A DNA stretch of 64,000 nt from Monocercomonoides exilis PA203 (taxonomy: Eukaryota; Protista; Preaxostyla): positions 496,001 to 560,000 of the forward strand of contig LSRY02000003.1 in NCBI GenBank assembly GCA_001643675.2. The letters are read 5' to 3'. This document shows positions 3,101 to 59,940 of this stretch, in pieces. How positions within the stretch are numbered: the first letter of the stretch is position 1; each line of letters starts with the position of its first letter. The position numbers and the translations under genes were made by a program. The notes beneath the pieces are model-generated. The model was given only the letters and a program-made list of their open reading frames with translations. It searched no databases and was not told the origin of the DNA.

Positions 3101-3614
3101 GAGTGCTTCAGATAGAGAAATGGATCGGATTACGGAGGCCAAAAGGATGGTTGAAGGAATGAGTCGCACGGAAGCAATGAAATTTACTCTGCAGCAGCAG
3201 CAAGAGCCGCTCCCGCAGCCCCGCCACCACATTGGGCCGAGGGCGCCTTCGCCGTCTTCTGCTGCAAAAAGAGGAACAGGTGCTGCTTCTTCTGCTGCTT
3301 TTAGTGGAAGTCTTCCAAAGCAGTCGCAGTTGCAACAGCCTCCTCGGCGGGCACATGCGTCTGCTTCTCCTGTTTCTACGGTGATAGAAAAAATTGTCCA
3401 CTCGCCTTCTATCTCTCCAGCAACGCAGCAGAGTACGAGCTTTTCGGATGCTGTCGTTCATGACATATCTCGTGTGCGCAGAGACGCACCGCCTGCTGCA
3501 CGAACATGGAACACATCTTCAAATCCCCGTTCAATAAGCAAATTCAAAGGCGTGCCGCCGCCGTCTCCGCAGCCGCTTACTGACCAGTTGCTTCATAAAT
3601 CTCGTGGTTTATAA
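187..3614 (+). CDS. POC5: POC5-like centriolar protein (centrin-binding) with long acidic/Gln/Ser-rich C-terminal extension; multi-exon
   Basis: ATG at 187 and short GT-AG introns join coiled-coil exons to ORF 933..3614. Sfi1-like centrin-binding motifs (ICFDSWR, KKCFSRWR) precede a coiled coil and LRNAVFRGVTALNQETM, which matches the POC5 box (AFMRGVCALNLEAM). Confidence 0.75.
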
Positions 3615-14050: not shown

Positions 14051-14539
14051 AATTCATCTCATTCAAAGACAAATAAATACAAACTCAAACATTCTTTCTG
14101 CTCCCTTTCAGCCTTTTCGGTGAATTCAGCGAAGCATTTTTATTCAAAAACACTTTCTTAATTCTCCAAAATTATCATGTCTGCTTGAACTAAATCAAAA
14201 AAACATTTTCAAAAAATGAAAAAGAAAAAAAAAAAATAAATTCTCTTTTCAAGGGAAATCAAATCAAACATTTATCACATTTCCATTGAACAGCAAGAAC
14301 AATATATTCGTAGAAAAGAATTGTCAATAAAAAATCTTATATAAATTAATAGCAGAAACCACATCTATTACAAACACGAAAAATGCAATCTTCAAGAAAA
14401 TAAAATGCCTTTGTCATGATTCGAATTTTCATGCAAAACTGTGAATATTTGTAATTATTTTCACAAATTATTAATTGATCGCGTGCATAAATAATATTTT
14501 CATTTTTGTTATGTTTGGAAGTCGTTTATCTTGTGGAAT

Positions 14540-17500: not shown

Positions 17501-20500
17501 GATTGGGATGTCGATTTATTCATATTTCTCGATGGATACTTTGATGATACAATATATGTGGATGGAATATCCGGAGTGGAGAGGGTATATTGTGGATTGG
17601 AGAAGGCGCCATGTTTGAATGTGAATTATGGGATGGAGCGTTTGAAGAGAACAAATGTTAAAGAAGAGATTATTGTTATTTCAAGTACGTTAATGGCGGG
17701 GTATGTGGATTTGGGAGGAATGTGCATAAAGGCAAAAACCGAGGCAATTGTAGAAATAGAATGCCAAAGGGAAGTGAGTGGATCTGAGGAATGTGTTCTG
17801 AAATCGGCATCACTGACAGAAATACAGTTCATTGGGATTGTTGTTCCATCGAGTTTTAGCAGAGCAATCACATCGGTGATTGGATCGAGCACTCAAAATG
17901 GGGAGTTGCACATGAAGAACTGTGAGATGAGTGTCGTTGGCGGGAAGGAAAACACGATTGCATATTTCTTGATCAAATCGACAGGGAAGATGGTTGAATT
18001 GGACTCTGTCACGATTTCAGATGTGAAATCAACAGTCTCGTTGTTTTCAATTTCGCTTTTCTCAGGAAATGTGAATGAGCAGGAATACAAAGTGAAACTA
18101 TTGAATTGCACACTGGAAGGATTGCAAATTGATGAAGGTGGAGAGGCAGCAGTGTTTGGAGGGAGTGTGGGAGTTGGGATGGCGATGAATGGAAGCAGAA
18201 TTGATGGAGCATTGTCGATGAAGAGTGAAGAAGGAGGGTCACTGAAGATAGTGTTGAATGAAGGAGGATATGTCTCCATTGATAATAGTTCATTTGTTGA
18301 ATGTATTTGCGAGAATATGAGTGAGGGAGGAAAAGGAGGAGGGATTTATCTGGATTGCAGCCTGAATGAAGAAGCATTTCAACTCACAGAGATATCGTTT
18401 TCTGGGTGCAGGGCAACAGTTGGGAAGAACATGTTTGTGAAGAGCAACAATCTGGTGAACAGTGTGGATACAGAGCGTTTCGCATTTGATTGCTCAGGAT
18501 ATTCTAATGATGGGAATGCATTTGTTGGGGAAGATGGGACTTATGAGGAAATGGATCTTCGAGTGTTTCTTGTTTCTTTGAAGTGGATGGATGTGTCTGT
18601 ATCGACTGGTGGTCATGACACATTGGAATGTGGAAGTGATGTGTTTTACTTGTTATTCGATTGATCATGGCCTTTTGCACCTGACATCAAAACCTGTTCG
18701 TCTAATATTCATTGTGGCAAAGAGCATGATTGAAGGAGAGATAAATCTGGAAGAATTGAATTTGAGCTCGAAGAGCAGGGAGATGTGCAAAGTTGAAGTG
18801 AAATCAGGGATTAAGAAAGCAAGGGAGGCATTGGTGAAAACAGCTGGAACAGTCTCATTGCTGAGAGTGAACTTTGTATTTGATCCAAATTTTGCTTCTT
18901 CACATGAATCATTGATATCACCAGAGGGAGGGATTCTTGAAATTATGAATTGCTCATTCGCTTCAAAACAATCCAATGAAGAAGAAAATGAATTTGCAAA
19001 CATTCCATTTCACATCATCAATATGGAAAAAGGAGAATTACAACTTGATGGATGCACAATATCAAATCTCATTCTTCAAGAATCTGCTTTGCATCTTTCA
19101 TCTTCTCTTCCATCAGCAATTGATTCATTAACCATTTGCAATTCAACAATTGAAATCTCTCTGATAGATATAAATGAATGCGGAAAATTGAATATGGAAA
19201 AGTTACGAACAGAAAATATCACAGTTGAAGGAAATGGAGAATCACTGATATCTTGCCTGTCAATGAAAAAGACAATTCAATTTACAAATTGCACAATTGG
19301 TGGAGTCAATTCACAGATTACAAAAGGTAAATTGATGAAATTGGAGGATTGCACAGATATGAAAATGGACAGTTGCATTTTTGATGGGAGTTCAAATGAA
19401 AGAAATGAACAGACTTTAAATGAGGGAGAAGAGATGTGCAGATGGGATGGATCTTTAGTGGATATTGTGAAGAGTTCTGTGATGATGAAAGACACAACAA
19501 TCTCGAATTCACCAGAAGGTGGAATAACAATGAGTGGAGGAAATATGATTATTGAGATGGGATTATTTGAGAACAATAATCCATCCATTGAAGGATATCC
19601 TTCATTGAGAAGAAATATCATCTGTTCAGATTCAGGAACATTGAATGTTAGAAGTTTGAAAGGAGGAGATGGATTGGAGAGAAATACATCGCTTTGGATG
19701 TTGAACAATGGGTGCAGTTTTGAAGGGATTGTTTCTGAGAGGGAATCGTCGTTCTTCATTCCTGTTCTGGAGAGTGTTGAGGCAAAAGAAACAATCGATA
19801 GAATGAAATTGATATTCAAAGGATTGCTTCTTTTTCCATGCAATCTGTCATTCGCAGTTGTGAAGAGAAAAGGAGAAGAGAAAGAGATTGAACATTTTGA
19901 TTTTGATATGGAAGGATTCTTGTCAGAAAGAGAAGTTGAAGGGAGTGTGGGAAAAGATCTGATCAGCAGTTGTGGAAATGAAATCGAGGTGAGTGTTTCT
20001 GTTTTGTTTGGGAATGCAGAATCTCCTTCTTCAACAAATTCATTCATTCTGAAAAATGCAAGCATTACTCCTCCAAAAGGAGATGAAAGGATTGTTGAAG
20101 GAGGAAATGAGAAGAAGTCGTGGTGGATTGTTATTGTGATTGCATGCTTCATATTTATGATTTTGCTGACAATAATTGTTGTTTTGGCTATTCGATGGAG
20201 GAAGGTTAAGAATGAAGCAGAAGATCTGAGAGAAATTGTGAATGACAACATCAGAAAAGATCCGAAGGCATTTGAGATGGTGACGATGGAGATGTCACCT
20301 GAGGAACAGTGGAGGAGAGCAGAGAGGGAGGCAGAAAAGAAGAACGATGAGAGAATTAAGAAGAGGGTGTATGAGAAAAACTTGGGTCATTCGGAGTCAT
20401 CAGAGCATCTTTTGGCTGAAAGTGGATCAACTGAATACATTTTGGGGAGAGATTCAGACAAGATCCCAGAATGGATGCTGGAGAAAGATGAAGAAGAAGA

Positions 20501-21479
20501 GATTAGGAACAGAACACCATCACCATCCATCTCATCCACTTCAACAACCGATTCAGATTCAACGTTTGTTCGAACAGAGAGTCTGTGTCCAACCACTTCG
20601 TCCATGTCGAATCTGGTGGATGCAATGGCGTGCTCATCACCTTATGAAAAGTTGATTGTCGATTTGCGAGATTCTCTGTTCATGCTGCTTCATGGGCGGA
20701 ATGAGAAGAAGGAGCTGGCGATTGGATCATTGAAGGAGAGGGAGCTGACAGGAGCACAGACCCTGTTCTGGGTGGCGAATGGGGCACTCCACTCGCTTGA
20801 AGATGAGGAAGACGAACTTCCCTCTTTACCGAACCTGAGTCCGCACATTGTGCTGTTCTCGGAGCACCTGGTGATCTGCATTGCCCTCCACTCGGACTTC
20901 TCATCAGGCTCAGACACCTCATCTGCATCGTCCACCTCCACCATTGTCACATCATCCTCTGATTGCTCAGCGATCAACAAGATGTGGAGAGACACACAGT
21001 TGCCTTCATCAGCATTTGAGGATGCAGACAATCAGTTTGAGTGCTTGCGGTGGAAGGCGCCTGAATTGCAGATGAACAAGAAGATGGGAGCGACAGAGAA
21101 GTCAGTGGCATTCTCGATTGGGATGATGCTGTGGGAGTGTGTGACACTCGAGATCCCGTTTGGAGAATATGAGGCAGCGATCGCTGGGCAGAAGATTGCG
21201 AATGGGGAGAGGCCGAATGAGCGGGGAATTGAAGAGAGCATGGTGAAGAATGTGGTGAATGCGTGTCTGTCAGCAGAGGCATCGAAAAGACCGGCACTCA
21301 CCGAAGTGAAGAGAGAGCTGGCTGGGCTGTTTCCAGATGGGACATTTGTTGTGACGATGACAGATGCGATCATTCTTGAGGAAAGCAGTGAAGAACGCGA
21401 AGAAAACGATGAGGGCAAGGGAAGAGAAAAAGAAGAGAAGCCAGATGCGAATGAGATGAAAAACTTGTTTGGCAAATGA
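14540..21479 (+). pseudogene. Large type-I membrane protein: signal peptide, pectin-lyase-like beta-helix ectodomain, TM helix and degenerate kinase C-lobe; disrupted by one TGA and one +1 frameshift
   Basis: Signal peptide MKGNLTAIFLLAIMLCLL; GGA(L/I) and FxxCxA repeats; TM WWIVIVIACFIFMILLTIIVVLAI (~20121-20192); RWKAPE...SIGMMLWEC...IPF...GERP...CL....KRP. ORFs 14531 and 16463 are in frame across TGA 16370-16372. An extra T near 18643-18646 shifts into ORF 18591..21479. Confidence 0.8.
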
Positions 21480-31554: not shown

Positions 31555-34500
31555 ATGCGTTCGTCTCAAACGCAGAGAACTGAAAGAGGGCCAATAAAAT
31601 CATTTTCAAAGCGAATTATTTGCTTTATTCTGACATTTTCTGTTATATTTACGATACAGCTTATTTCTCATCCACATTATACTTTTAATAATACACAAAA
31701 AATTGTTTCATCCTCAGCGCATGGTCCACAAAATAACATCACATTTTCATCTGAAAATACTTCAATGATATGCGTCCATAAATATTCAAGAGCTTCTGCA
31801 GAAGAAGAAGACGAAGGTGACAATGACGAAGATACGTGCAAAATACCTGACATTCCAACATCAGAAAAATGCTTTTATATAAAAAATAATTGCGCAGATT
31901 ACGGAAGTGATGGATACATTCGATATCTTCCGTTGAGATATTGCTCATTTCCCCATTCGCCTCAACTCTTTTTCCTTCTTTCTGTTCTTGCAGTCGTTAT
32001 TTGGTTTATATTACTTGGAACAACTGCAGATAGTTATTTTGTTCCACCGCTATTGTTTATATCAGATAAAATGGGTCTTTCTGACTCTATGTCCGGGATT
32101 ACGCTTCTTTCTCTTGGAAATGGTGCTCCAGATCTTTTTTCACAAATGGCTGGAGCCGCGGGTGGTTCGCTTGCAATGAGTCTTGGAGAAGCACTCGGAA
32201 GCGGAATATTTACTGTAACAGTGCTTATTGCACTCATCACATTCATCCACCCATTTGTTATTGAGAAAAAACTGCTATTTAAGGATGCTCCAATGTACAT
32301 GATATGTGCAATTCTTCTAATGGTTGTAGTAGCGACACAGAAGATGACTTTAGCTTTTACAATAATATTTCCATTGCTTTATGTTATGTATGTGTTGTTT
32401 TCATATCTTCTCGAGAAATATGAAATGCACAAGCAAAGGAAGCAAGAGAAGGCTTTGGCAAATATGGATTCTCAGATAGAAGCTAATCTGATCTCTCGCG
32501 AAAGTGCACAAATTAAAACAGAAAACAGCGGGGCAGCGATCGTGTCTGGGGACATTTTTGAGGCGCAGCGTTCGTTTTCGAGAAAACGGAAGCTGACAAT
32601 GGACGAAAGGCAAACACACGAAATGGGGCTGGACAAGCTGAGCCAGTTCTTTGCAAAGAAGAGCGTGTTCCGAAAGGGCTTGCAGCAGTATGGAGGAGCA
32701 GTGCTCAGCGAAAAGGAGAAGGAAGAGCTGCGGATCCAGTGGGAAGGCGCGGGGACGTTTGGGAGGGCCGGGTTTCTTGGGGCAGAGATGCGAAAGAAAG
32801 AGCGTGCCAGAGGATTCACCATGGGCAGCAGCGGACGGAGGGACAACAGCATGAATAGTAGCACAAATGAGGATCTGATAGGAGGAAGCAGCAGTAGCAG
32901 TGGAAGTGGCAATGACTACAATAGGAGGAACGAAGGGCAGCGGCGCACAACTACAAAGCCCTCGCAGGCGATGCAGATGGGCGAGTACGGAAGCAGCGGT
33001 GACTTCCGGCAGCTGCAGCAGATGACACGAAAGAGCAGCGAGTTGGCGATTGATTCGCATCTTTTGGATGGCGGCGCATCGTCTTCGAGGTCGTTTCTCG
33101 CTTCTCAGTCTTCTTCTTCTTCTTCTGCCGGCAGCAGAACAGCGGATAGACTGAGGCGTCCGTCTTTTCTCTATCTTTCTGGGCAGATGTCACCTGAAGC
33201 AGGAAACTCGAAGAAGACAAACAGATCTCATTCTATTTATGGCAGGAAAGAGCGGCTGTGGCGGCGAGAAACGAAAGGGCTGGACGACGAAGGGATTCTG
33301 GCGATGGCTGATTTGGAGGAGGAGAGGGAAAAGGCGTATTATGTGCGCTTTGGAAGGTATCAGCAGGAAGATACGTCGCAATTGAGTGCGCTGTCAGCAG
33401 CCACTGCACATTATGTGCCGGCTGCTGTTTCGTCGACGGAGGAGGAGTACAGAGGCATGCCATCGTCCTCGCCGACGTCCAAGCCGTTTGTTCCGCTTTC
33501 GGTGGAGCAGATGAAAGAAAACGAGGAGAAGGAGAAGGAGAAGGAGAAGGAGAAAGAGAAGGAAATAGAAAAGGAGAAAGAACAATGCGAAGCTGAAACA
33601 TCCAAAGAAATCAGCCTATCAATTCCCACAAGCGATGCACTTGAGGAAGACGAAAAGGCACCAGAATATTCACCGACAGAACAGAAGGAGTCAGCCGACA
33701 CACTCAAAAGACCCGCAGGGCTTGCACAATATGGGAACAGCAGTGCTTACAGCATACAAAAAGATGAAGGAAAAGAAGGTGAAGAAGGAGAAGGAGGAGG
33801 AGGAGGAGGAGAAGAAGACGATGATGATGAGCCGAAGACGTTCAGTGGGCGGGTCATTGAGACGCTGAATGAGTGGACAGAATGGAGGGACAAAGGAATC
33901 ATCGGGCGGATGATGGCGATAATTGAGTTCCCTTTCACCATTCTGAGAGTGTTCACACACCCAACACTCGACGTGCAGCACCCGCTGCGCCTCGCCATCA
34001 CCACCTTTTGCACTCCTGTCTGTGCTGCTTTCTTGACACACGCCTACAACAACCCAATCGTCAAGCCATCTCCTGCTGCCCTTGCTGACGAAAATGCCTC
34101 TTACTGGCAGCTCAACCCGTTTCCCGCATGGCTGCTCTGCCTCATCGTCGGGGCTGCCCTGGTGCCTGTGATGCTGTTTGTGAACTTGCAGTGGCTGCGG
34201 AAGCGTCTGCCGAATGCTGTCAGCTTCTTCTTTGCGCTGTGGCGGCTGGTGATGTCGATCCTGTGGCTGAACCTGATAGCGACGGAGAATGTGAATGCGC
34301 TGCAGGCGATCGGCGACTTCATCGGCATCAGCCAGGCGGTGATGGGCGCGACGGTGCTCAGCTGGGGCGCAGCGCTGGGCGATGTGGTGGCGAACATCGG
34401 TGTGGCAAGGGCAGGGCGGCCGATAACTGCTGTGTCTGCATGTTATGCTGGCCCGCTGATCAACTCGCTGCTGGGCATCTCTCTCTCGTCGGTGACGCTG

Positions 34501-34719
34501 TTCATATCACGCGGCAGCGTACGCCCCATCCACGTCACTGCCAGCGCTGCCCTGTGGGCTATGACGATCGCCATCATCGCCTCGATTGCAGTCCAGATTG
34601 TCGTTGGGGTGTTCAGAAAGCGGAAGTTCGAAAGATGGTTTGCGCTGGTGCTGTTCTTTTTCTACATTGCGTTTGCTGTGGTTATTGTTTTGGTGGAGCT
34701 GAAAATTATTCCTGGTTAG
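31555..34719 (+). CDS. Cation/Ca2+ exchanger, CCX/NCLX (SLC8B1-like) family
   Basis: Intronless 1054 aa with two TM bundles. Alpha-1 repeat GITLLSLGNGAPDLF; alpha-2 repeat GATVLSWGAALGDVVAN...SACYAGPLINSLLG. Cys-containing N-terminal luminal segment and a ~500-aa central loop. Confidence 0.92.
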   Translation: MRSSQTQRTERGPIKSFSKRIICFILTFSVIFTIQLISHPHYTFNNTQKIVSSSAHGPQNNITFSSENTSMICVHKYSRASAEEEDEGDNDEDTCKIPDIPTSEKCFYIKNNCADYGSDGYIRYLPLRYCSFPHSPQLFFLLSVLAVVIWFILLGTTADSYFVPPLLFISDKMGLSDSMSGITLLSLGNGAPDLFSQMAGAAGGSLAMSLGEALGSGIFTVTVLIALITFIHPFVIEKKLLFKDAPMYMICAILLMVVVATQKMTLAFTIIFPLLYVMYVLFSYLLEKYEMHKQRKQEKALANMDSQIEANLISRESAQIKTENSGAAIVSGDIFEAQRSFSRKRKLTMDERQTHEMGLDKLSQFFAKKSVFRKGLQQYGGAVLSEKEKEELRIQWEGAGTFGRAGFLGAEMRKKERARGFTMGSSGRRDNSMNSSTNEDLIGGSSSSSGSGNDYNRRNEGQRRTTTKPSQAMQMGEYGSSGDFRQLQQMTRKSSELAIDSHLLDGGASSSRSFLASQSSSSSSAGSRTADRLRRPSFLYLSGQMSPEAGNSKKTNRSHSIYGRKERLWRRETKGLDDEGILAMADLEEEREKAYYVRFGRYQQEDTSQLSALSAATAHYVPAAVSSTEEEYRGMPSSSPTSKPFVPLSVEQMKENEEKEKEKEKEKEKEIEKEKEQCEAETSKEISLSIPTSDALEEDEKAPEYSPTEQKESADTLKRPAGLAQYGNSSAYSIQKDEGKEGEEGEGGGGGGEEDDDDEPKTFSGRVIETLNEWTEWRDKGIIGRMMAIIEFPFTILRVFTHPTLDVQHPLRLAITTFCTPVCAAFLTHAYNNPIVKPSPAALADENASYWQLNPFPAWLLCLIVGAALVPVMLFVNLQWLRKRLPNAVSFFFALWRLVMSILWLNLIATENVNALQAIGDFIGISQAVMGATVLSWGAALGDVVANIGVARAGRPITAVSACYAGPLINSLLGISLSSVTLFISRGSVRPIHVTASAALWAMTIAIIASIAVQIVVGVFRKRKFERWFALVLFFFYIAFAVVIVLVELKIIPG

Positions 34720-35040: not shown

Positions 35041-38000
35041 ATGTGGGGGTCAGGATCATCAACGGTTTTTAATTATTATACGGAACAATTTAATTTTTTA
35101 ATAATCTTTCTTTCTTTTGTAATAATATCCTTAACTTTTCCTTTAACACAATAATTACACAACGCTTCACAACATGTTAAACTGATTGCATGATGTATAT
35201 ATTTGTTTGAATTTTAGCCAAAAATACAATGGATCTCCCCTTCGGCTGTTGCACAGGAACAACTTAGAAAAGCAATTTCTCTTGATTCTTTTGGAGATCC
35301 GTCATTGTCAGGTGCTCCTTTACCAACTTCTTCACCAAACACATTTTATTCTCCATCAAGGCATCAAGAGCAATTCGATTCTTTTTCTGTATCTGAGGGA
35401 ATTCGTTCACCAAATCATGAACAAATTTCTGTTCAGTTGCAGAATTCAGATACATCAGATTTGTCGGTTTGCATTTCATTTTTTAATAACTTCTGTATAA
35501 TTCATTTTTGATATTTTTGTTTTGTAGCTTGATCTGCACTTAATTTCAACGTTTGAGCGTGATAAAGAGTTGAGTAAAGTCGAATTATTCAATCTATCTC
35601 GGCTTCACAAACAAGAACGAGATAAACAGTTAAAAGATTCTTCAGACGCAACGCAAGTTAGCGAGTTGAAGGAAAATTCACAAGATAAAGAAGGATCTAC
35701 TTCACAAAAAAAGGAACATGATGTGTCTAATCCATCTTCCCCAACAAAAGGTTTTCGTTTCAATATTTATCTAGACTAATTTATTTATTTTCATCCTTTT
35801 CTACTTAGTTATGAAACGTTTAACAGAAGCCTTAGAGTCTATCTATTCACAAGCCGAGCCTCAAACGACTTCTTTTTCACAGCTTTTTATGAGGACATCT
35901 CGGTCTGTGAATGCGTCTTCGCTCAGATCTTCTTCTCCACTTTCACAGCGCTCTTCACCTTCCACATCGTCTCCAGTGAACAATCTTGGGCAGCGGAATC
36001 GGAGTAAGCAAAGAGGGAGAGAAAGAGAAAGGGAGAGAGAAAGAGAAAGCAAGAAGCATCAGCAGTCGGCTGCTTCTGAGAACGATGCAACTGATTCTGC
36101 TGTGAGAGGGAAAAAAGATAGGATGATGAGAAGAACAAGGGAGAAAAGAGGAGATGAGGGAAAAGAAAACAACAAAGCAAGAAGTGCTTGTTCTTCTTCT
36201 GCATCGTCGTCTTCTTCTTCTTCATCTTCTTCCTCCTCCTCCTCTTATTCTTCCATTTCATCTTCACCTCCATCTTCTTCAATGAGGAACAAGAGCTCTT
36301 CTTCGAATTCAATCTCAACTCCTATTCACAGGGCGCATGCAAATGAGTCTTCTGCGACCTCTACTCCTCCATCTGCTTCAGCAAATGCATCAATTGCATC
36401 AACATCATCTTCACCTCCTCCTCCTTCTTCTTCTTCCTCCTCTTCAACTTCCTCTTCTTCTATAACATCTCATACCTCTTCTCCTCCAGCATCCAAACCA
36501 TCTCACACTTCACCATCATCCTCATCCTCATCCTCATCCTCGTCCTCTTCCTCTTCCTCCTCTTCTTCTTCTTCCTCATCTTCTTCCTCTTCTTCTTCCT
36601 CCTCACTCCATTCTCCTCCTCTCATTCCCCTTCCCTCCACCCACTCATCCGCCATCGTTTCATCTGATGTATTGGAAGGTATTCTTCCACAGAGCAAAAA
36701 GAAGAGAAATAGAGATGTGATTGTCATCAGCGACGAGACACAGGAAATGGGGGGGAGTACAGAATGTGAGGAGGTGGAAGAGGAAAGGGAAGAAGAAGGA
36801 GAAAGGGAGAAAGGGAAGGAGAAAGAGAAGGAGAAAGAAAAGGAAGAAGAAAAAGAGAGAAAGAAGGAAGAAGAGGAAGAAGATGATGATAAAATTGAGA
36901 AGGCAAACAGCTCAATCGACAAAGAAGGAGAAGGAAAGGGAAAAGAAGGAAAAGAAGGAAAAGAAGAAGATGAAAAAGAGAATGAAACGAATAAGAAGAG
37001 GACGACACTTGGCAGAGCAAGCAAAGGACAACAGAACTTGAGGCACAAGAGAATCAGGATAGAACAAGATGATAGTGAAGCATATTCAAATCCGAATATC
37101 ATGTCATGTTCAGACACATCTTCAAATTTGGATTCAATTTCAACTTCAATTTCAAATACGAAAACAGATGCAAATGTGAATGCAAATGCAAAACGTGAAG
37201 CTGATGTTGGTATTGAAGCAGAAGCAGAAGCAGAAGCTGAGGCTGATGCTAATGTTGATGTTAATTCTGAATCCAAGCTTTCTTCTGACAGTTCTGTTGT
37301 CTTTCTCACATCTCCACTCACTTCACATTCTTCTTCTCAATCGAATTCTCTATCAACCTCTTTGTTGAATACAAAGATTGCTTCATCGCCTGCTTCTTCG
37401 TCTGTATCGTCTGATTCTAATTCGTCTCAGAACAGTTTATCTAACTCTTTTCCTTCTCTATCTTCTTCTTCTTCTTCTTCCTCCTCTTTTCCTTCTTCTC
37501 CCTCCTCTTCCTCTTCTTCCTCCTCATCTCCTTCTTCCTCATCCATTCCCTCTCCCTCTCCTTCTTCCTCTTCCCTTCCATCCTCTCAAACAAAGCCAAC
37601 CACTTCCATTTCTTCCCTCATCTCTCGTTTCTCTCCTGCCCAGCAGCGTCTGAAGGCTCTTCGCTCAAACACACTTTCTCAGCACGCTTCACAGGCTAAA
37701 AGCTCACTTTCTAGTTCTTCTTCTCCTATTAATGCTATGGTTTCATCATCATCATCTTCTTCTTCTTCCTCTTCCTCTTCTTTTACATCTTCTTCTTCTT
37801 CTTCTTCATTAGCATCCGCATTATCATCATCTTCCTCATCTTCCTCTTCTCATTCACTTCATCCAGCTTCTTCTCAATCATCAATCACACACTCTTCTGC
37901 ACTCCCTCGTCTTTTGCCACTTGCTCCTCTGCAATCCACATCTTCTTCTGACTCATCATTGCAATCTTTATCTTCTCCTTCTTCTCTCTTTTCTTCTTCT

Positions 38001-38525
38001 TCCTCTTCTTCTTCTCTTTCTTCTTCTTCCCCTTCTTCTTCCTCTTCCTCTTCTGATTCTTGTTCTCCTCTCACTCCTTCTCTCTCCTCTCCTCCAACTG
38101 CCAGCCAAACACTGGTGAAGCCAAAGATCTCTTTGTATCGACGACTTTCACGCTCTCAGTCTATCTGCTCACAGACACTGCCTGCTATTGCTTCTCTTTC
38201 ATCTTCCTCTTCTTCCTTTTCTTCCTCAGCAGCATTAATCTCATCCCCAGCCACTTCTTCTTCCTCCTCTTCTACCAACACTCCAACCACAAATACAGAC
38301 ACATCTTCCATTTCAGCCATTTCATCACAAAACAGTTTGATATCATCACAAACACACAATCAGCCTTCTAATTCTCTTCCTTCTTCTCTTCCTTCTTCTC
38401 TTCCTTCTTCTCTTCCTCTTTTGCATTCTCTTTCTCTGCCTCCGCCTCCTCCTCCTCCTCCTTCATCTTCTCCTTCTCCTTCTCCATCAGCGCTGATGTC
38501 TTCATCATCTCGACCAAATTCTTGA
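35041..38525 (+). CDS. Very Ser-rich low-complexity protein with a charged central block; 4 predicted exons
   Basis: ATG 35041 (MWGSGSST), then exons at about 35218-35466, 35529-35750 and 35809-38525 flanked by GT/AG. Terminal ORF is 904 aa. Confidence 0.6.
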
Positions 38526-48700: not shown

Positions 48701-50868
48701 TCTTCATCTCCAGCGATTGTCGGAGCTTCGTTTTCTTCTTTTTCTCCTCCAAAATCATCTTCTCTTTCTTCAAAGGCATCTTCCACTGCTTCGAATAACT
48801 CCTCCGCCAAAGTGATTTCTTCATCTCCAAGTGCTTCTTCTATTTCTTCTTCGTCCACTTTTTCCCCTTCTTCTTCTTCTTCTTCTTCTTCTTCCTACTC
48901 TTCTTCTTCCTCTTCTTCCTCCTCCTATGTTTCCTCCTATTCCCCCTCTCCTCCAATCACATCTTCAAATGGCCTGCACATGCGCCGTGCTTCCCTCACC
49001 TCTGTCCCTTCAGACAATTCTCTTTCTTCCCCTTCTCCTTCCATTTCTCCTTCTTTTTCTCCTTCTTCTCATAACCCTTCTCCAAATTTAACCCCAAGAA
49101 AAGCTGCTTATCTTGTTTCTTCCCCCACAAAATCACCAAATTTTGAGAATTCTTCTTTGTTTTCATCTTCATCATCATCTTCTTCTCCTTCTCCTTCTCC
49201 TTCTTTTTCTTCTTCCTCTCATTCATCTTCATCTTCATCTTCTTCTTCTTCTTCTTCTTCTTCTTCAATTTCATCAGCCTCCTCAAAATCAACATTGGCA
49301 GCCTCGTCTGCATCTGCAGGCGAAAACATGCCAAACAACTTCACATCACCTTATGTATCCAACCAACCACACACACAACCACACACACATTCTTCTAATT
49401 CTTCTAATTCTTCTAATTCTCCTTCTCCTTCTTCTCATTCTCCTTCTCCTCGTTCTCTGTCTAATTCACAATCAAAATCACAATCACAATCATATTCGCT
49501 CACTCGTTCCTCTTCCCTCTCCTCATCTTCCCTCTCCCCCTCTCACTCACCAGCACATCCATCGAATAGCACACATTCTCTTCTCCTTCACACTCGAATA
49601 CGCTCTGCTCGCCTCTCTTCGCAGGCTGATCGAAATTTCGACAGCAACAAAACAGCTTTCCAGCCGTCTTCCCCCCATCCTCCTTCCACTTTGGCTGCTG
49701 TGTCTTCAGCACCATCGTTGTCTACTGCTTCTTCTTCTCTTTCTTCTTCTCCTTCTTCCCCTTATTCTCTTGTACAATCAGCTTCTGTTACTTCCGTTGC
49801 TTCTGTTGCTTCTTCTTCTTCTTCTTTGACAGCTGTTTCGTCTTCTCCAAGACGTTCTTCTTCATTTGTGCCATTGTCTACCTCTCCATCACCTTCTTCC
49901 TCTTCTTCATCGTCTTCTTCTTCTTCTTCTTCTTCTTCCATTTATACAAAAACTGCAACTACAACATTATCTTCTTCCTCAACCTCTTCATCTTCATCAT
50001 CATCATCTTCTTCTTCTTCTTCCTCCCCTTCTTCCTCACCATCACCCTCATCATCCCCACCATCATCATCAGTATATGTAACTCACTCTTCTCGCTCTCC
50101 CCGTTTATCCTCTTCTCCTTACGCCTCCCACCAAACTTCCAACTCTTCCTCGCCCCGCCTCTCAAAAACAGCCAAAACAACAAAAACAGCCAAGCAAATC
50201 AGCAGCACTAGCTCAGGTATTGTTGTGAGTGTGAATATGAATTTGAATGTGAATGCGAGTACGAATTTGAATGTGAACACTGCCACAAACAGCAGCAAAT
50301 TGTCGAAAAGTCCTCGTCTGACACATCCGACTGCAGAAGTTGCAGGGCATTTGACAGCTTCGAATTCTTCTTCTGTTTCGAATGTGACAAATGTTGCTAA
50401 TGTTTCTGTTATTCCTGTTAGTCCAGTTACGTCAGCTGCGCCTGGAACAATTGTTTCTGTGGCTTCATCCTCTTCTTCTCCTTCTTCTCCTTCTTCTCCT
50501 CTTTCTTCTGCTTCAACTTCTTCCTCTTCTTCTTCTCTTTCCTCTTCCCCAAACACTTCTGTAGCTGCATCCTCCTTCACCTCTAATACTCCGAACTCTT
50601 CTTTTCCGCCGGAATTCTCCGGCCGCCCAACAAACAGGGCGCCTGCTGCTTTATCTGCAGCGTCAACACCAGTTTCTTCTGAATCTCTTATCCCATCAGC
50701 ACCTCCGCTCTCTTTTCCCACTCGCCCTTCGTCTGGCCCGTCCACACGCCCTTCGCACAGGCAGATGGCGGCGGGCAATGGCAGAGGAGGAAGCGCTGGT
50801 ATGTCTGTTTGTCTGTAAATAAATAAATATATATATTACAAGGCCAATGGAGTTATTTTCATAGAGAG

Positions 50869-53193: not shown

Positions 53194-53838
53194 ATTTGTT
53201 AATCATTTTCATTTTAATTTTATTAGTCAATAAAAAGAACGTGCATAAAAATAACTTAATTGCAAAATCGTCAGTCAGTTATTTTCAAAAAATGAAGAAT
53301 GTGAAAGAAAAAATTTAAAATTGATATTCTGACAAAAGCGAAAGATGAAACAAAACTGTTATTTTTCAAATACCATTTTTCTTATAATTTATTTTCTGAA
53401 TAAAAGTTTATTTAAAAAATTCACTTCCTTTTATAAAGTGAGATTTTTTTGGAAAAAATTTTATTCAATTATGGTGAAGCTTTGATCAAAAAAGCTAAAG
53501 ATATTTAAACTGTAATTTATTATTTAAATTTCAACAAAAAATGATAAATATCACAAATAAATTAAATTTGACTAATTGTTTTTCAAGTGATTAAATCACA
53601 GACTATTCGGTATTCTTTTTTTAAAGTCTTGAGTTTTATTTCATTTCATGATGACACCTTTTCGCATCTTTTTTTGCATTGTTTTTTATGGGGCAAAAAA
53701 AATATCAAAAGAATTTTACATTCAGTGCTGTTTACAATTTTCTTTGAAAAGAAACCAAAACAGTTTTGCGTATTTATTTATTTCTGTTGTTCAAAATTTT
53801 AACAACAAAATTTTTATTGTTATTTTTAGGAACAAGTT

Positions 53839-56800
53839 ATGAGTTCAAAAGATGTACAATCTGTTTCAAGCTCCATTGTCGCAGAAAGAAATGCTGTTCC
53901 TTACGCACGATTTAATGTTTTCGATCATTTGTTTGGACTATCATTTATTTATTGTTTTATGAACATTTTAATTGAATTTCTCATGTTTTAGGTTGTTTTC
54001 TTTTTTTCATCCTTATAAATTGGTTTGCAATGCTTTATATTGTTGAGTTTTTTCATAAATATTTTTTAAATAGCATTCAAGGCAAATATCGGATTCAGTG
54101 ATTATTGGAATTTCAATTTTGCTTGCTTTCCAATATGTTTTCGTTCCCCTTCGAAGAACTGATATACCTTTTCTGCACTTTACGGATGTATACCGAAAAA
54201 TTGGGTATTAAATTTATTTATTGTTTGATTTCAAACATTTGCTCCATTAGATTATATTTCGACCCTTCGTTTTATTCACCAACTTTTTTATCATTTGTAA
54301 TTTTCTTTGCACTAATGGGAACAGCTTTGATTCTTACTGTTGCACTTGGAGTTATTGTTTGTCTACTCGCAAAAAGAGAAGGAGGAGCACCCACTGCCCT
54401 CCATTACGTTAGCGATAAACTTGGAATGCTCGTATCAGTTACATTTGTTGCACCTTTCTGCATTGTTTTTTCAAAGCCTTGGGCATGTCTAATTCAGGAG
54501 GCTGTATCTCCAATAAGTGAGAACAACAATTTTACGTATTGCAACCCAACTGCTCGCATTCCTCTTCTTGTTTTTTCAGCCATTTTCCACATATCTCTAT
54601 TCGTATTTTCTGGATTATATCGATGCTTGATCTTCAATGCAAACTTGCGCTCGGCAAATCTCAACAGCACACGATGGGGCGCAACCACGTGCTTTGCCCA
54701 ATCTTTGGCTTATCTCAGTTCCTTTCTTGTTACAATTCTCATCGAGTTCCATCCAACAGTATCTGCTGTTATCCACACAGCAGTCTTTGCTATCCTTATG
54801 TGCTTCGAGGTCATTGTCCTTCCGCAGACAACGCCTCACTCCAACTCTTTGTTTTCGGCAATTTATGGAGCAGCCTTTGGATCGGGGATTGTGTCGCTTT
54901 TGATGCCATTTTGGAACACTCTCGCAGCAAACAGCACATCTGAAGGCAATAAGCCTCTGACTGTTTTGAGTGTCATATTCTTCTACGTGTCGTTGGTTGT
55001 TATCTGCGCAGTTTTTGCTGTATGTGCTGGACTGTTAGCATTCATACGGCACAGAAGACTTGCTCTTATCAAGCCTGTCTATTCACTTTCTGAGCAGCAT
55101 TCCAAGACTCTTCCTCATGAAGCTAATGCTACATATGATTCTTCGTCCCAGCGCAATCAGCTGGCACCTTTCAAGCACAATAAAAATATCATGAAGAACA
55201 AGAAGAAAGAAAGTAGCTTCAAAAAAAAGCCAATTGGCCTTCAAATTGTTATTGACGGTGCAGTTGTTACACATTTATTCAGCTCAGATGTTATGCCTCT
55301 ATCTCACTCGCAATCACACTTGCATTCTTTACCCTCTTGCCAATCTCCAAGCGCCTCTTCACACACACAGGTTGCTTCTTCGCCTTCTCAAAGCATCCAT
55401 TTCTCCACTCCCACTCAAATGTGCACACCGCAACGAATTTCATCATCTTCTACGCCTTTGCCATCATCATTGCCTTCATCCACAACTTCGCCGACTCCTT
55501 CGGTCTCGTCTTCTTTGTGCCCTTTGCCTGCTCGTAATATTGTTTCCTCATCGAGCAACCCTTCCTTCGACTCAGTCTCTCCTTTCATTGCAAACCAAGT
55601 CGGAATCATCAAAGCCATCCTGCGTTCGATCAGCAGTCCGTCTGCAATTTGGACTAAGATCAGCTTTTTGTCTGATCCAACATTCCGAAATCGACAGGAT
55701 GTGGTTGAGTTTGTGGACAATCTGTTCATCGCAGCGCTGAAAAAGGAGAAGTTCAGCGCGCGTTCTGATCTGATAGTATCGTACTCTCTTTTCCTCTCCT
55801 CCTTCATGAGCATCCTCCGCCGCCCGAACGCCCTCGCCACACAGCTGCAGCGCGCCTGTGAACAGTTCCCCAGCTGGGTTGATCGCTGGATGATATACGT
55901 GAAGTCGAAGGAGATGGAAGCGCTCATCCGGCAAAGAGAAAATTTCACTGGAACAGAAGGCGCCATTGGCAAAGGAAGAGGCTTCTCAGAGTTTGGCAGC
56001 AGTGCATCGTTTGTGTCTAACTCTTTTAACATTCGCATCCAGCTGCAACAGGCGGCGAAGAACGACGAGTTCAGCAAAGCGCACATGTTGCGCGTGTGGT
56101 CGCTTTTGTCACGGCGTTCAGTTGACATGCCAAAAGTGATGAACCACATCGTCAAAGCGCTGAAGTATGCACGCGATTCAGAGAACATTTATGTGCGTCT
56201 GTTGGAGCAGTCACCAGACAATCCGAATGTGATGCGGCGGCTGGCTTTGGTGCTGAGAGACGTCTACTCTGATGATGAGACAGCAAACAAGCTGCTACAC
56301 GAGGCAGATGAGCTGGAGGAGACGAATGACATGGAAGAGCTGCTGTCAGTGGGAAACAACGAGGACAATGAACCACTGCCAACAGCTGACGGAGAAGGAT
56401 TGGAGAGCACGTGGGGAAGCGGGGCAAGTGGAAGTGCGAATGACGCAGACGATAACAGCGATGGGGAAGGTGAAAGAAAAGAAAAGCAAGGAAAGAATGC
56501 AACAAATGGAATTTCAGTGAACTTTGGGAGTGGAGCTTTGAAAAACAAAAGTCAGTCCACGCTAAATGGCAAGTTGTCGAATTCTCCTTCTCAAGAAAAC
56601 ACCATAGCCGACGGAGTGCATCAGAATGGACATGACAGAAAATTGAGGAAGGCGAAAAGAGGGGAGCTAAAGAGAAAAGAGAAGGGAAGCACCCGACGAT
56701 CAAAAAAGAACTGGCTTGACATACTCACAAAAGATGAAAAAGAAAAATCAAAAATAATATTGAAGGCGTTAGTGCCAATTTTATTGAATGGAATCGGAAT

Positions 56801-59552
56801 TGCGGGTATCTCACTTTTGGTGTCCTACTTCCAAATCGATTCCCAATTCAAAGAGTCGACTGACTACATGGAAACTTCTCGCAAATCCATCAGGCTCAGC
56901 ATCTACCAGAGCCACATATTGTGTTTACTTGCGCAGTCACTGAGCTCCTTAGCAAACGCATTATCAGCGCCTACAAGCAAAAACATAGACACAAGCGGGA
57001 TGGCAAACCAGGCATTTGACCAAGAGTCCTTCGAAAATCAGCGGAATGAAGCGAAGGAGACGATCATTAGCCAGTCGCTGCTTTTACCAGAGCTGTTTAC
57101 AAGGACAGCTGACAGCTCAGCGTGGAAAAGCGACTTTGCCTCGTTTGTTATCTGTTTCATGGACAGCGCACAGGACAATCTGATGAAGGAGTTTGTGACA
57201 GAGAACTTAAACTTGATCACTCTCATCAAATGGTCTGAGGACATAGCACTGGATCTGACAGACAACAGCGTGAAGTACACAGATTATCGTTCTCTCCTTT
57301 CGTTCTTATACAGAGGCGCTGCTTGTTACATACTGAATTCTCCATTGTCAATCTCTTCAGAGCTGGAAACGCTTGCAATGGATGCCTACTTCAGAGTGAA
57401 TGACATATCAAAGCACAACCTGATAATGCTGATTATTCTGCTCGTGTTCTGCATTGCCGTCCTGGTATGCACCACCATTCTGCCAATGATCGTGTTCATC
57501 CGCATCGTCATCAGAGAACGAAAGAAGGCGATGCGGCTGCTCTGCACAATCTCTGCTGAATACGCCTCGAAAATGGTGGAGCGTCTCGAAAGCTCTTCAA
57601 ACGGGCATTCGCACAGCCATCAAGACACAATTACTCCAACAGAAACAGACGTATCGTTTACAGATGGTGTTGCAGATGATGCAACAAAGAACAGCACATC
57701 TTCTCTGCAAATTGCAATTTCCATTGACGAGAATTACGAAACTTCGCAGGCGATTCCCTGTGCTACACCCACTTCAACAAAACAGTTTCGGTTAGCTTAT
57801 TATTCACCGAATAACGCCTCAGCAGATGCATTTTGTAACTTCCCTGCTAAACATCAACAGAACTCTTTTGTTTCTCAACCATTTTCTGAACAACAACGGA
57901 ATCAAATGTTGCCAAATCCAGATAAGCAGAAAATGAGGAAGAAAGCAAAGCAACTGACACCTAAAGAGTTCAAGTACGAATTGGAGATGTATGGAAAGGG
58001 GAAAGCGAAGGAAAATCGAGAAAATGAAGAAGAGGAGAAGGAGGAGAAAGAGCGTATTGCACAACAGCGCATTGAGGATATGGATGAAAAACTGCGTGTG
58101 CTTGGAGGAGTTGTTCCGTCCTCTGTGAAGTTGCAGCTGATTCTTGGGGTGGTGCTGCAGATTTGTCTAGCATGTTCATTTTATGCTGTTTCAATTGTTG
58201 CTATCACAGGCACCAGCGACCATTCAGGGAAGATCATAATGAGTGGATACCGCCGCATTGCGCTGAAGCAACTTTCAGCACTTGCCTCGATGGTTGCAGG
58301 GAAGATCATGTTTCCTGTAGCTGATGAAAGTGTATTCTTCAAGGATCCAACTTCGTCATCGCCTGCCTTTCGAAACTCGACTTTCATGACAAGCTTGGAG
58401 AATGTGAAGAGCACGCTGAGTGTCCAGATGCAATTCATCCAGCTGATTTCGAAGCGCTTTCTGGTTGGCTCGTCAGAAGGGGCTGTTACATCAGACGAGC
58501 GTCTGGACTCCATTGTGATCACAAGGACACAAGGAACAGATGCACTCATTGACGAGATTATGGTGGAGCCAACGAAATGTCTTCTGATCAACCGCACTTT
58601 GTGTGACACAACAACACCTGGCGAGCGCATGCCTGGCGTGCCTTCTGAATTCAACGGGCTTTCAGAGCTGGTTGAGCGTGCAGCGACTGCTGTGTCAGAA
58701 CTTGTGAAGATTCCGGACGATGAGTTGAGTCTGAACGATATTAATTATCTCTTCATAAAGGGAATGACGTTCTTCGATGCAGAAGATGCGCTGGTTCGGA
58801 TTGGAGACGAGCTGCAGAAAAAGGCGAGCGATTTTACTTCGAGTTACTCGACCGTTCTGCTGGTTGTGTTCATCTCTATCGCAGTGCTTGCATCTGCCGT
58901 TGTAGGGATTTTTATTTTGCCAATTCCAGTGCATATACAAGCAGTGATGCAGCAGACAGAGGCGATTGTGGAAGTTGCCTGCAGAAGGGAAGTCGAAAGT
59001 GTGAAATGGAGCGAAGATCTTGCTACGTCTGTTGCGCGCATTGATGATGCACATTATGTAATGGTGGAAGGGATGAGGCAGCTTGTTGTGTTGGTCAACA
59101 ACAACGAGCCACACGAGAAGGTTCAAATGCTTCTTGATCAGCTGCTGGTTGTTACATTTATTCACTTCTCAGACGAGGAGAAGATGATGCTTTCGTGCAA
59201 ATATCCAAAGAAGCTGAGAAACGAGCATCTGATGGCACATATCCAGCTGCTCCGAAAGTTTGTCAACTTTATCGACAGGGTGAGCACTCGTCGTTTGCCA
59301 GCGACAGAAGTTGTCCTCTTTTGTTCAACGTGGATTGTCAATCACATTCAGTCACTTGATGCTGAATTGTCTTTGTTCTTGCTACAAAAGGGCGACCAGA
59401 ATGATCTGAATGGAGCAATTGATTTGAGCCATTTCGAGATGCCTGGCTCAATTGAAGCGTGGCTTGATAGCGATCAAGCCCCAATGAAAGAAAAAATGAT
59501 TTTTGAAGCAACAGTTGACAACGCAAAGAAAAGATGCAAATTTTTGATTTAA
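53839..59552 (+). CDS. TmcB-like multi-pass membrane protein with C-terminal hemerythrin domain; 3 short 5' introns
   Basis: N-terminal bundle of about 8 TM helices; TmcB-type TPR-like region (RVWSLL...IYVRLLEQSPDNPNVMRRLALVLRDVYSDDETA); two TM-ectodomain-TM modules; hemerythrin at 59007-59385 (WSEDLAT..IDDAH, HFSDEE, EHLMAH, WIVNHIQSLD). Confidence 0.88.
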
Positions 59553-59940
59553 GTTTCATATTTTATAATTGTTACAAGCAATGAAAAAAAGAACTTTCTT
59601 TAATTTTATTTCAATTATTTTTTTGATTATGTTGTTACAATTATCTTTTCAATAGTATTCCTTTTTATTATCTTTTTATTGTTATTAGATTTTATACTCG
59701 TTAATCGTTTTCAAATTTAGTTCTTTTTTTCTTTAAATGAAAATCGAACACATTTTTTTCGCTTTATATTCATTTCCAGTTTGTTGAAAATACAACTTTT
59801 GTTGTATGATTTTTGTGTTTCGGAATTTGTTTTTCCAATATAATTTACAACTTTTCTTTTCTTTTTTATTTGAATTTATTTACAAAGGTTTATTTTTTGG
59901 TAATATCAAAATGAAATGAAAGAAAAAAAGAAATTATGTA

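Follow-up and report, generated by a model that had tools for sequence, protein, structure and literature searches.

The window analysed here is a stretch of 64,000 nucleotides from the genome of the protist Monocercomonoides exilis, an amitochondriate oxymonad (C25:496001-560000 in the genome contigs). At 53839-59552 on its plus strand lies a single gene of four exons, whose product of 1851 residues is a TmcB-type multi-pass membrane protein ending in a hemerythrin domain with all of its iron ligands in place. We read the protein as a TmcB-family receptor in which hemerythrin is a cytosolic module sensing O2, NO or peroxide, or else iron or redox state, with output through partners of its TPR region. 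We give this reading about an even chance, and the sensing itself is what we infer from the sequence. The genome encodes at least 56 receptors of this build, and on sequence grounds these are the best candidates for the oxygen or redox sensors of M. exilis.

Bacteria have sensors coupled to hemerythrin, and eukaryotes have sensors with hemerythrin-like domains. The hypoxia-inducible factor (HIF) pathway is absent from mitochondrion-less anaerobic protists, and we know of no characterised eukaryotic membrane O2 receptor of the TmcB-hemerythrin type. The proteins are already in public databases, where the M. exilis entries are named 'uncharacterized' and are truncated at the 5′ end, and where several Blattamonas entries are named 'putative hemerythrin'. 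What is new is a eukaryotic multi-pass receptor family built on hemerythrin, which is undescribed in the literature searched: full-text articles on hemerythrin together with Monocercomonoides, Blattamonas, Preaxostyla or Paratrimastix hold no description of the TmcB-hemerythrin architecture. A 2016 survey of hemerythrin architectures has long eukaryotic forms in Naegleria and Nematostella only. Karnkowska et al. 2019 (PMC6759080) treat the M. exilis hemerythrin as a laterally acquired oxygen-stress gene and do not mention the receptor fusion.

The hemerythrin domain and the receptor that carries it

Searches used exon 4, its parts or single exons as queries, never fused exons, and residues are numbered within exon 4 (E4; adding 85 gives full-length numbering). 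The first-pass annotation had proposed a TmcB-type membrane receptor with an intact hemerythrin at its C-terminus, and the profiles agree. TPR_TmcB (PF25474) matches with 53.3 bits, against a cut-off of 27, and the NCBIfam model TIGR02481 (hemeryth_dom) matches the C-terminal tail with 77.3 bits, against a cut-off of 51.75. The related model NF033749 scores 75.7 bits, under its cut-off of 84. By these scores, membership in bacteriohemerythrin-type families holds at the level of the domain alone.

All seven di-iron ligands are present in canonical order and spacing, in the pattern HHEHHHD (H, H-x3-E, H-x3-H, H-x4-D). They are the H of IDDAH, the H and E of HFSDEE, the two H of EHLMAH, and the H and D of NHIQSLD, at E4 residues 1601, 1638, 1642, 1659, 1663, 1698 and 1703. 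Both conserved Trp residues that had been noted earlier are there as well (KWSEDL and TWIVNH). The residue following the fifth His is Ile, as is I119 of the Desulfovibrio vulgaris protein DcrH, a position that presumably has a role in the pocket. Judged by these residues, the site can still form a canonical O2-binding di-iron centre.

The fold agrees with the profiles. We modelled window 58098-59549 with AlphaFold 2 (AF2) on a 44-sequence family alignment (A2), numbering model residues from the first; the mean predicted local distance difference test score (pLDDT) is 92.1. A single-sequence model of the hemerythrin region reached pLDDT 45 and was not used. Helices 313-334, 339-366, 371-397 and 402-431, all with pLDDT above 90, form an up-and-down four-helix bundle, and the model is unbroken from transmembrane (TM) helix 12 through a linker helix (276-299) into this bundle. 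Against the hemerythrin domain of DcrH (DcrH-Hr, 2avk), Foldseek gives a TM-score of 0.85 with a root-mean-square deviation (rmsd) of 2.1 Å, and VIA gives Z 16.0 with an rmsd of 1.8 Å over 132 residues, so that the hemerythrin match is far beyond chance. This confirms the expected fold, and the analogy with DcrH is borne out from the sequence side too: in a phmmer search of the PDB, DcrH-Hr ranks first (E 7e-7) and myohemerythrin next, making DcrH-Hr the closest solved structure by both measures. The nearest shape to residues 301-436 in the ESM Atlas is a bacteriohemerythrin cluster.

Hydropathy (Kyte-Doolittle, window 19) gives 12 peaks in total, in line with the large multi-pass build of TmcB proteins. 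They are arranged as eight N-terminal helices (one in exon 3, seven in E4 residues 21-259) and four more in two TM-ectodomain-TM modules, which is the arrangement first proposed from the sequence. A loop of 579 residues runs from TM8 up to TM9, a charged loop of 206 residues lies between TM10 and TM11, and 213 residues follow TM12 to the end of the chain. Clusters of Lys and Arg stand at both ends of the 579-residue loop, next to TM8 and TM9, and also behind TM10 and TM12. The positive-inside rule then predicts a cytosolic position for the 579-residue TPR loop, for the charged loop and for the C-terminal tail with its hemerythrin, and an outward orientation for the two ectodomains. Pfam matches at E <= 1, the threshold for all Pfam statements on this protein below, are limited to TPR_TmcB, a sub-cut-off Hemerythrin and a weak TPR_14 within the TPR_TmcB region (12.6 bits, cut-off 23.5). 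As the annotation had stated, this search finds no PAS, cyclase or other catalytic domain in the protein of 53839-59552.

In the model, a long helix (8-68) leads up from TM11 into the helical ectodomain 2, and another long helix (227-273) leads back down through TM12. Its fold neighbours (residues 33-260) range from Z 8.5 to 13.1: PilJ (8wdf) at 13.1, Vc1313 at 11.6, PcaY, McpN and Adeh_2942 at 11.2, then NarQ, Tsr and NarX. Closest in shape to residues 6-290 among ESM Atlas structures are PilJ-domain histidine kinases (14-408; TM-score 0.45), GGDEF/EAL sensors and methyl-accepting chemotaxis proteins (MCPs). As modelled, ectodomain 2 is thus similar in shape to the TM-flanked four-helix-bundle sensor domains that bacterial chemoreceptors and kinases carry. 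Pfam gives no sequence-profile match of ectodomain 2 to the 4HB_MCP or PilJ sensor domains. Two Cys residues of ectodomain 2 are invariant in a 14-sequence alignment (A1), while each is kept by 90% or more of the 44 sequences aligned in A2, and this conserved pair fits the predicted extracellular location. Module 1 aligns with module 2 in HHalign (probability 85%, E 6e-6, 218 columns), a score that the TM ends possibly inflate, and the two show no similarity by BLASTP; module 1 may be an old duplicate of module 2. A predicted complex of the two ectodomains as a pseudo-dimer scored 0.01, which is no evidence either way.

A receptor family in Preaxostyla and its loss of iron ligands

Genome-wide profile searches covered 82.3 Mb in 101 contigs, and TmcB and hemerythrin matches were paired by contig, strand and distance. 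PF25474 marks 69 loci, and TIGR02481 has 58 matches. A hemerythrin-like domain lies 3-8 kb downstream in 56 of the 69 TmcB loci, mostly within one open reading frame (ORF) of 1700-3500 aa. Seen from the other side, 56 of the 58 hemerythrin matches sit behind a TmcB TPR, the other two being shortened copies on C47. None of the 58 is a stand-alone hemerythrin gene: every match forms the end of a multi-pass protein (1200-3500 aa) or of a shortened version of such a protein.

The earlier suggestion that hemerythrin occupies the place usually taken by a cyclase found no support. PAS domains, a C-terminal cyclase or both had been named as the usual TmcB layout, and the M. exilis protein has neither. 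The guanylate cyclase model PF00211 (Guanylate_cyc) marks four loci in the genome, all outside TmcB ORFs, and the PAS models PF13426 and PF00989 have no match in it. With 56 of 69 TmcB loci carrying hemerythrin and no TmcB ORF carrying a cyclase, hemerythrin is the normal C-terminus of the family in this genome and no cyclase substitute. Blattamonas and Paratrimastix have this layout too, so the comparison makes hemerythrin the ancestral C-terminal domain of the TmcB family in Preaxostyla, not a replacement.

That hemerythrin is found only as the predicted cytosolic end of receptor-sized proteins, at no fewer than 56 loci, revises the view of this gene family as one of oxygen stress. In keeping with that view, the domain could be a membrane-anchored buffer of O2 or peroxide that shields oxygen-sensitive enzymes, and no sensor. 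Bacterial single-domain hemerythrins have such roles. Karnkowska et al. 2019 count the M. exilis hemerythrin among the bacterial-derived oxygen-stress genes. A stoichiometric scavenger would nevertheless be oddly placed on a receptor-sized multi-pass protein of 1200-3500 aa. Most copies are also without ligands of the O2-binding iron, and a kinase is fused to the module in one relative; we consider a buffer very unlikely.

The two shortened copies, at C47:470896-471465 (L006/L016) and C47:218873-219439 (L008/L019), correspond to the hemerythrin end of a 2650-aa receptor at C47:119058. One is an ORF of 522 aa and the other is broken by a TAG. No TmcB TPR precedes either of them, and by their sequence they are partial duplicates or pseudogenes.

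An exhaustive phmmer search outside the genome, with the last 1200 residues as query, returned Blattamonas nauphoetae proteins of 1441-3353 aa (several of them among those named 'putative hemerythrin'), further M. exilis paralogues, TmcB fragments of Streblomastix strix matching in the TPR region only, and Paratrimastix pyriformis proteins. By local profiles, about 45 of the long proteins returned (at least 600 aa) have a TPR followed by hemerythrin. Entries sharing the layout include MONOS_10743, MONOS_10741 and MONOS_957 of M. exilis, KAK2957477 of Blattamonas, and PAPYR_8313 and PAPYR_3728 of Paratrimastix. The Paratrimastix TmcB proteins P0074 and P0080 have C-terminal hemerythrin-like domains (TIGR02481 E 5e-12 and 5e-8). 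The remaining homology searches (hemerythrin region, TPR region, 14-sequence profile) returned the gene itself and two close paralogues, the profile adding one PAS/HAMP/hemerythrin protein. Feature neighbours in the Atlas are TmcB clusters of Preaxostyla and Parabasalia, at 0.94-0.97. Salas-Leiva et al. 2021 (PMC8516963) describe the tmcB family in Carpediemonas and as absent from all other metamonads sampled; the 69 TPR_TmcB loci of M. exilis, together with the copies in Blattamonas, Streblomastix and Paratrimastix, contradict that statement of absence.

One Paratrimastix relative, P0058 (KAJ4460679, annotated 'putative calmodulin-dependent kinase'), has an ectodomain, a TM helix, hemerythrin (750-866) and a protein kinase domain (Pkinase, 960-1229; 167.6 bits), and matches residues 799-1148 of the 1200-residue query. 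Like the M. exilis protein it has the homologous ectodomain-TM-hemerythrin module with the full ligand set; it differs in lacking the TmcB TPR and in having a C-terminal kinase, an explicit enzymatic output. As read from its domains, this fusion ties the ectodomain-hemerythrin module to signalling output.

The receptor might instead be an artefact of fusion, two genes or a pseudogene read as a single ORF. A case that looks like merged tandem genes does occur in Blattamonas: KAK2960695 (P0004, 3353 aa) has the order TPR, hemerythrin, TPR, hemerythrin, and is probably two tandem receptor genes fused in one annotated model. For the gene in the window this is scarcely credible. Its exon 4 is unbroken, the layout recurs in the 56 loci and in three genera, purifying selection acts over the whole length, and the AF2 model shows no break between TM12, the linker and the bundle.

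A tree was built from 206 hemerythrin domains. All 81 of Preaxostyla type, along with five others, fall on one side of a branch whose SH-aLRT support is 79. One of these five outsiders comes from a bacterial-looking contig with integrase genes. The tree is compatible with, and weakly supports, a single ancient capture of hemerythrin from bacteria.

Ligand sets were read from 22 M. exilis loci, sampled from the genome total of 58 copies, and from database representatives. The full HHEHHHD set occurs in 7 of the 22 (the window gene, L015, L018, L013, L014, L006 and L017), which form a coherent clade, and outside M. exilis in Blattamonas P0005 and Paratrimastix P0058. Public Preaxostyla paralogues and orthologues share the layout of TPR_TmcB, two modules and hemerythrin, and most of them lack one or two ligands of Fe2. 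Losses are almost confined to the first two His, the first being replaced by R, K or N and the second by Q, V, M, A, T or S. In hemerythrin chemistry these two His coordinate Fe2, which is the five-coordinate, O2-binding iron. Since most paralogues lack them, gas binding is not the function of the whole family.

The hemerythrin fold might then be mainly a structural or docking bundle, or a mono-metal site, as in the ligand-deficient paralogues, the intact site being ancestral baggage that gates nothing. Only 14 of the 81 Preaxostyla-type domains have all seven ligands, compared with 109 of the remaining 125, mostly bacterial, domains. The Glu and Asp that bridge the irons (E and D) and the three Fe1 His (H3, H4 and H5) are nearly invariant among the 81, and degenerate copies are still long open ORFs. 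This account nevertheless sits poorly with the retention of the full set in the seven-paralogue clade and in P0005 and P0058. Ligands of a functionless Fe2 would be expected to drift, as they do elsewhere in the family, and the ratio of non-synonymous to synonymous substitution rates (dN/dS) for linker and hemerythrin is 0.13 against the 87% paralogue and 0.07 against the 78% paralogue. These values are, with those of the TPR (0.11-0.12), the lowest in the gene; the C-terminal tail has 0.06-0.14. We regard the structural account as unlikely. By these comparisons the window gene belongs to the intact minority and is under purifying selection along its entire length.

The closest database protein is MONOS_10743 of M. 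exilis, with a hemerythrin 85-87% identical and a locus 497 kb away on the same contig. L015 (C25:48469-58368), 497 kb upstream on the same contig, is an 88%-identical copy of the gene. The duplicated block (window 53678-59879) is gene-sized, with flanks of about 160 bp before the ATG and about 330 bp after the stop. Synonymous divergence (dS) from this copy is only 0.07 over the N-terminal TM domain, against 0.4-0.6 across the 3′ half, which suggests gene conversion at the 5′ end.

Proposed sensing, known systems and the case against

In the proposed mechanism, hemerythrin would be a cytosolic sensor whose five-coordinate iron binds O2, NO or peroxide, or reports iron or redox state. A change of ligand or of oxidation state at the two irons would alter the contact between the bundle and the linker helix that follows TM12, and this change, together with whatever the ectodomains bind, would set the signalling state of the receptor. 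With an enzyme domain absent from the chain, output would pass through partners recruited by the cytosolic TPR loop.

Several observations weigh against this proposal. The profile check suggested at the outset succeeded with TIGR02481 and failed with the Pfam model: Hemerythrin (PF01814) scores 21.6 bits, under its cut-off of 25.3. Pfam finds no output domain in the chain. The topology is based solely on hydropathy and charge. The Z values of ectodomain 2 lie within the range that helical bundles can attain without kinship, so that its likeness to chemoreceptor sensor domains is resemblance and not membership. Of the 81 family domains, 67 lack at least one ligand, mostly of the O2-binding iron; some role of the domain must therefore be independent of a canonical di-iron site, and such a role could be the main one in the window gene too.

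DcrH (PDB 2avk, 2awc), an MCP, is like the M. exilis protein a membrane sensor protein of an anaerobe, and in both a helical sensor domain, periplasmic or extracellular, is combined with a C-terminal hemerythrin on the cytosolic side, as predicted for the M. exilis protein. Both hemerythrins have all seven ligands, with Ile as the residue that follows the fifth His. Unlike DcrH, the M. exilis protein is eukaryotic, has introns, 12 TM helices with an 8-TM N-terminal domain, the TmcB TPR and two ectodomain modules, and lacks both MCPsignal (PF00015) and HAMP in the Pfam search. Identity between the two hemerythrins is only about 25%. By analogy the M. exilis protein may work like DcrH; homology is confined to hemerythrin, and the protein is not a member of the MCP family.

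The founder of the TmcB family is tiny macrocysts protein B of Dictyostelium discoideum, and its members, like the M. exilis protein, are large multi-pass proteins with TPR_TmcB. A C-terminal hemerythrin is absent from TmcB descriptions in the literature searched, whereas the M. exilis protein has one. To our knowledge the Dictyostelium gene alone has an assigned role. As cited in PMC8516963, Dictyostelium tmcB has been placed in cAMP signalling during sexual development, and it shows late induction in hypoxia (PMC12750705).

Among eukaryotes, FBXL5 of animals and BRUTUS/HRZ of plants are regulatory iron or oxygen sensors in which a hemerythrin-type di-iron bundle does the sensing. These soluble parts of E3 ligases belong to a distant HHE branch of the superfamily. 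They offer a precedent for an iron- or O2-dependent stability switch, in which loss of iron or O2 would unfold the domain and alter receptor turnover. The absence of an output domain and the conserved tail past the bundle, alignable in 14 of 22 sampled paralogues, would suit such a switch. The domain is, however, of the bacteriohemerythrin/DcrH type, FBXL5 and BRUTUS are not among its PDB sequence or fold matches, and the protein differs from them in lacking F-box, LRR and RING in the Pfam search. The Paratrimastix module stands directly before a kinase, which better fits signal transmission. We think a stability switch quite unlikely.

A bolder form of the sensor reading, which we put forward tentatively and well short of even chances, is that receptors with an intact site are the primary O2/NO sensors of the Preaxostyla anaerobes, the mitochondrion-less oxymonads among them, and would be the eukaryotic equivalent of DcrH. 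Their hemerythrin would have been captured once from bacteria and wired to an extracellular four-helix-bundle sensor, and the roughly 80% of paralogues that lack the His ligands of Fe2 would be mono-iron or metal-free receptors tuned to other signals. The family is in this respect a natural experiment, with one clade that has the full di-iron site and many members that lack exactly the ligands of the O2-binding iron.

Gene model, feature coordinates and neighbouring sequence

The longest uninterrupted ORF of the region is 54105..59552 on the plus strand. The start at 53839 and the end at 59552 that had been proposed are both upheld, by way of three introns (Table 1). ATG 53839 is out of frame with the long ORF, and its unspliced reading stops after 50 codons, frame 1 meeting the in-frame TAG 53989-53991 when intron 1 is retained. 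The long-ORF frame is in turn blocked within exon 3 by the TGA at 54099-54101.

Table 1. Features of the TmcB-hemerythrin gene, in window coordinates
Feature	Position	Strand	Remarks
Exon 1	53839..53930	+	92 nt; start codon, 30 codons + 2 nt
Intron 1	53931..53991	+	61 nt, GTTTGG...TTTTAG; GT and AG kept across paralogues
Exon 2	53992..54022	+	31-nt micro-exon; G + 10 codons, LFSFFHPYKL
Intron 2	54023..54073	+	51 nt, GTTTGC...AAATAG
Exon 3	54074..54204	+	131 nt; 43 codons + 2 nt; carries TM helix 1, SVIIGISILLAFQYVFV
Intron 3	54205..54250	+	46 nt, GTATTA...CATTAG; less conserved than its flanks
Exon 4	54251..59552	+	1766 codons + stop, uninterrupted; TM2 to C-terminus
TM helices 2-8 of the N-terminal 8-TM domain	54312..55028	+	hydropathy peaks 1.6-2.9
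TPR_TmcB domain	56034..56327	+	PF25474; inside the 579-residue loop
Module 1: TM9, 200-residue ectodomain, TM10	56766..57479	+	by hydropathy; TM9 E4 839-857, TM10 E4 1058-1076
Module 2: TM11, 216-residue helical-bundle ectodomain, TM12	58137..58910	+	TM11 E4 ~1296-1318, TM12 E4 1535-1553
Linker helix, TM12 to hemerythrin	58923..58994	+	predicted by AF2, model residues 276-299
Hemerythrin four-helix bundle	59004..59390	+	TIGR02481, fold, seven di-iron ligands
C-terminal tail past the bundle	59391..59549	+	two short helices predicted by AF2 (450-457, 463-479)

The 5′ end was aligned with the paralogues L015 (C25), L018 (C11), L013 (C50) and L014 (C35). Conservation with the 78% paralogue, L018, sets in sharply about 10 nt 5′ of ATG 53839. 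In exon 1, which encodes a hydrophilic N-terminus with the last residues ...VPYARFNVFDH, the ATG and the reading frame are kept among the five genes and the differences are synonymous (AGT/TCT for Ser, GAT/GAC, TCT/TCC and others). The donor GT lies at the identical position in all five, after ...FD(H/Q) and two bases. The exon 2 block is exactly 31 nt in each of the five, flanked by AG and GT(A/T)TG, with the consensus reading (L/F)(F/L)FSFF(H/Y)(P/G)YK(L/V); its counterpart in L013 and L014 is FSFFYGYKV, with synonymous differences. Intron 2 has the donor GT(A/T)TG in all five genes, and its acceptor stands directly 5′ of the conserved HS(R/K) codons that open exon 3. The phases are consistent: 92 + 31 = 123 nt brings exon 3 to phase 0, and across intron 3 GG + A gives Gly.

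In the frame of exon 3, the gene and L018 differ at 18 codons, 13 times synonymously; the exon 3 peptide is matched in L013, L014 and L025 (tblastn), and TM helix 1 has a hydropathy of 2.28. The position of Y(L/F)DP, which is the opening of the ORF in many paralogues, supports the start of exon 4. Annotated homologues (MONOS_10741, P0010, of M. exilis; P0024 of Blattamonas; P0030; P0033) read ...RF..(F/V)D(E/Q)LLF....Y.L.SRNIS... over the proposed junctions, and the joined reading of exons 1 and 2 matches their DxLLFxxxY motif. The comparison indicates that ATG 53839 is the true start, joined to the long ORF through the three short introns.

The public gene call P0001 (1745 aa) is 100% identical to exon 4 from an internal Met at 54315, and the NCBI model of the 87% paralogue likewise opens at an internal Met. 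Going by our alignment, the public M. exilis gene models omit the three short 5′ exons, and any expression construct would have to take the corrected four-exon model into account. A start at the in-frame ATG 54135 was rejected, as this ATG is not kept in the 78% paralogue; both it and the public start at 54315 were also rejected on the pattern of synonymous changes, by which 54074-54204 is read in another frame. Logan contigs with the 78% paralogue are 100% identical to the genome, flanks included, their RNA or DNA origin being indistinguishable.

Elsewhere in the window, ORFs of 600-900 aa at 933-3614, 14531-16372, 35811-38525 and 48812-50818 have no Pfam match. The ORF at 31555-34719 (+, 1054 aa) has two Na_Ca_ex domains (126.9 bits), and that at 18591-21479 (+, 962 aa) ends in a partial protein-kinase domain. 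A repeat of about 420 bp at window 22276-22698 matches in both orientations at L015:1674-2090 and L015:2834-3242, upstream of the paralogue; it is palindromic or inverted, and probably a dispersed mobile or foldback element.

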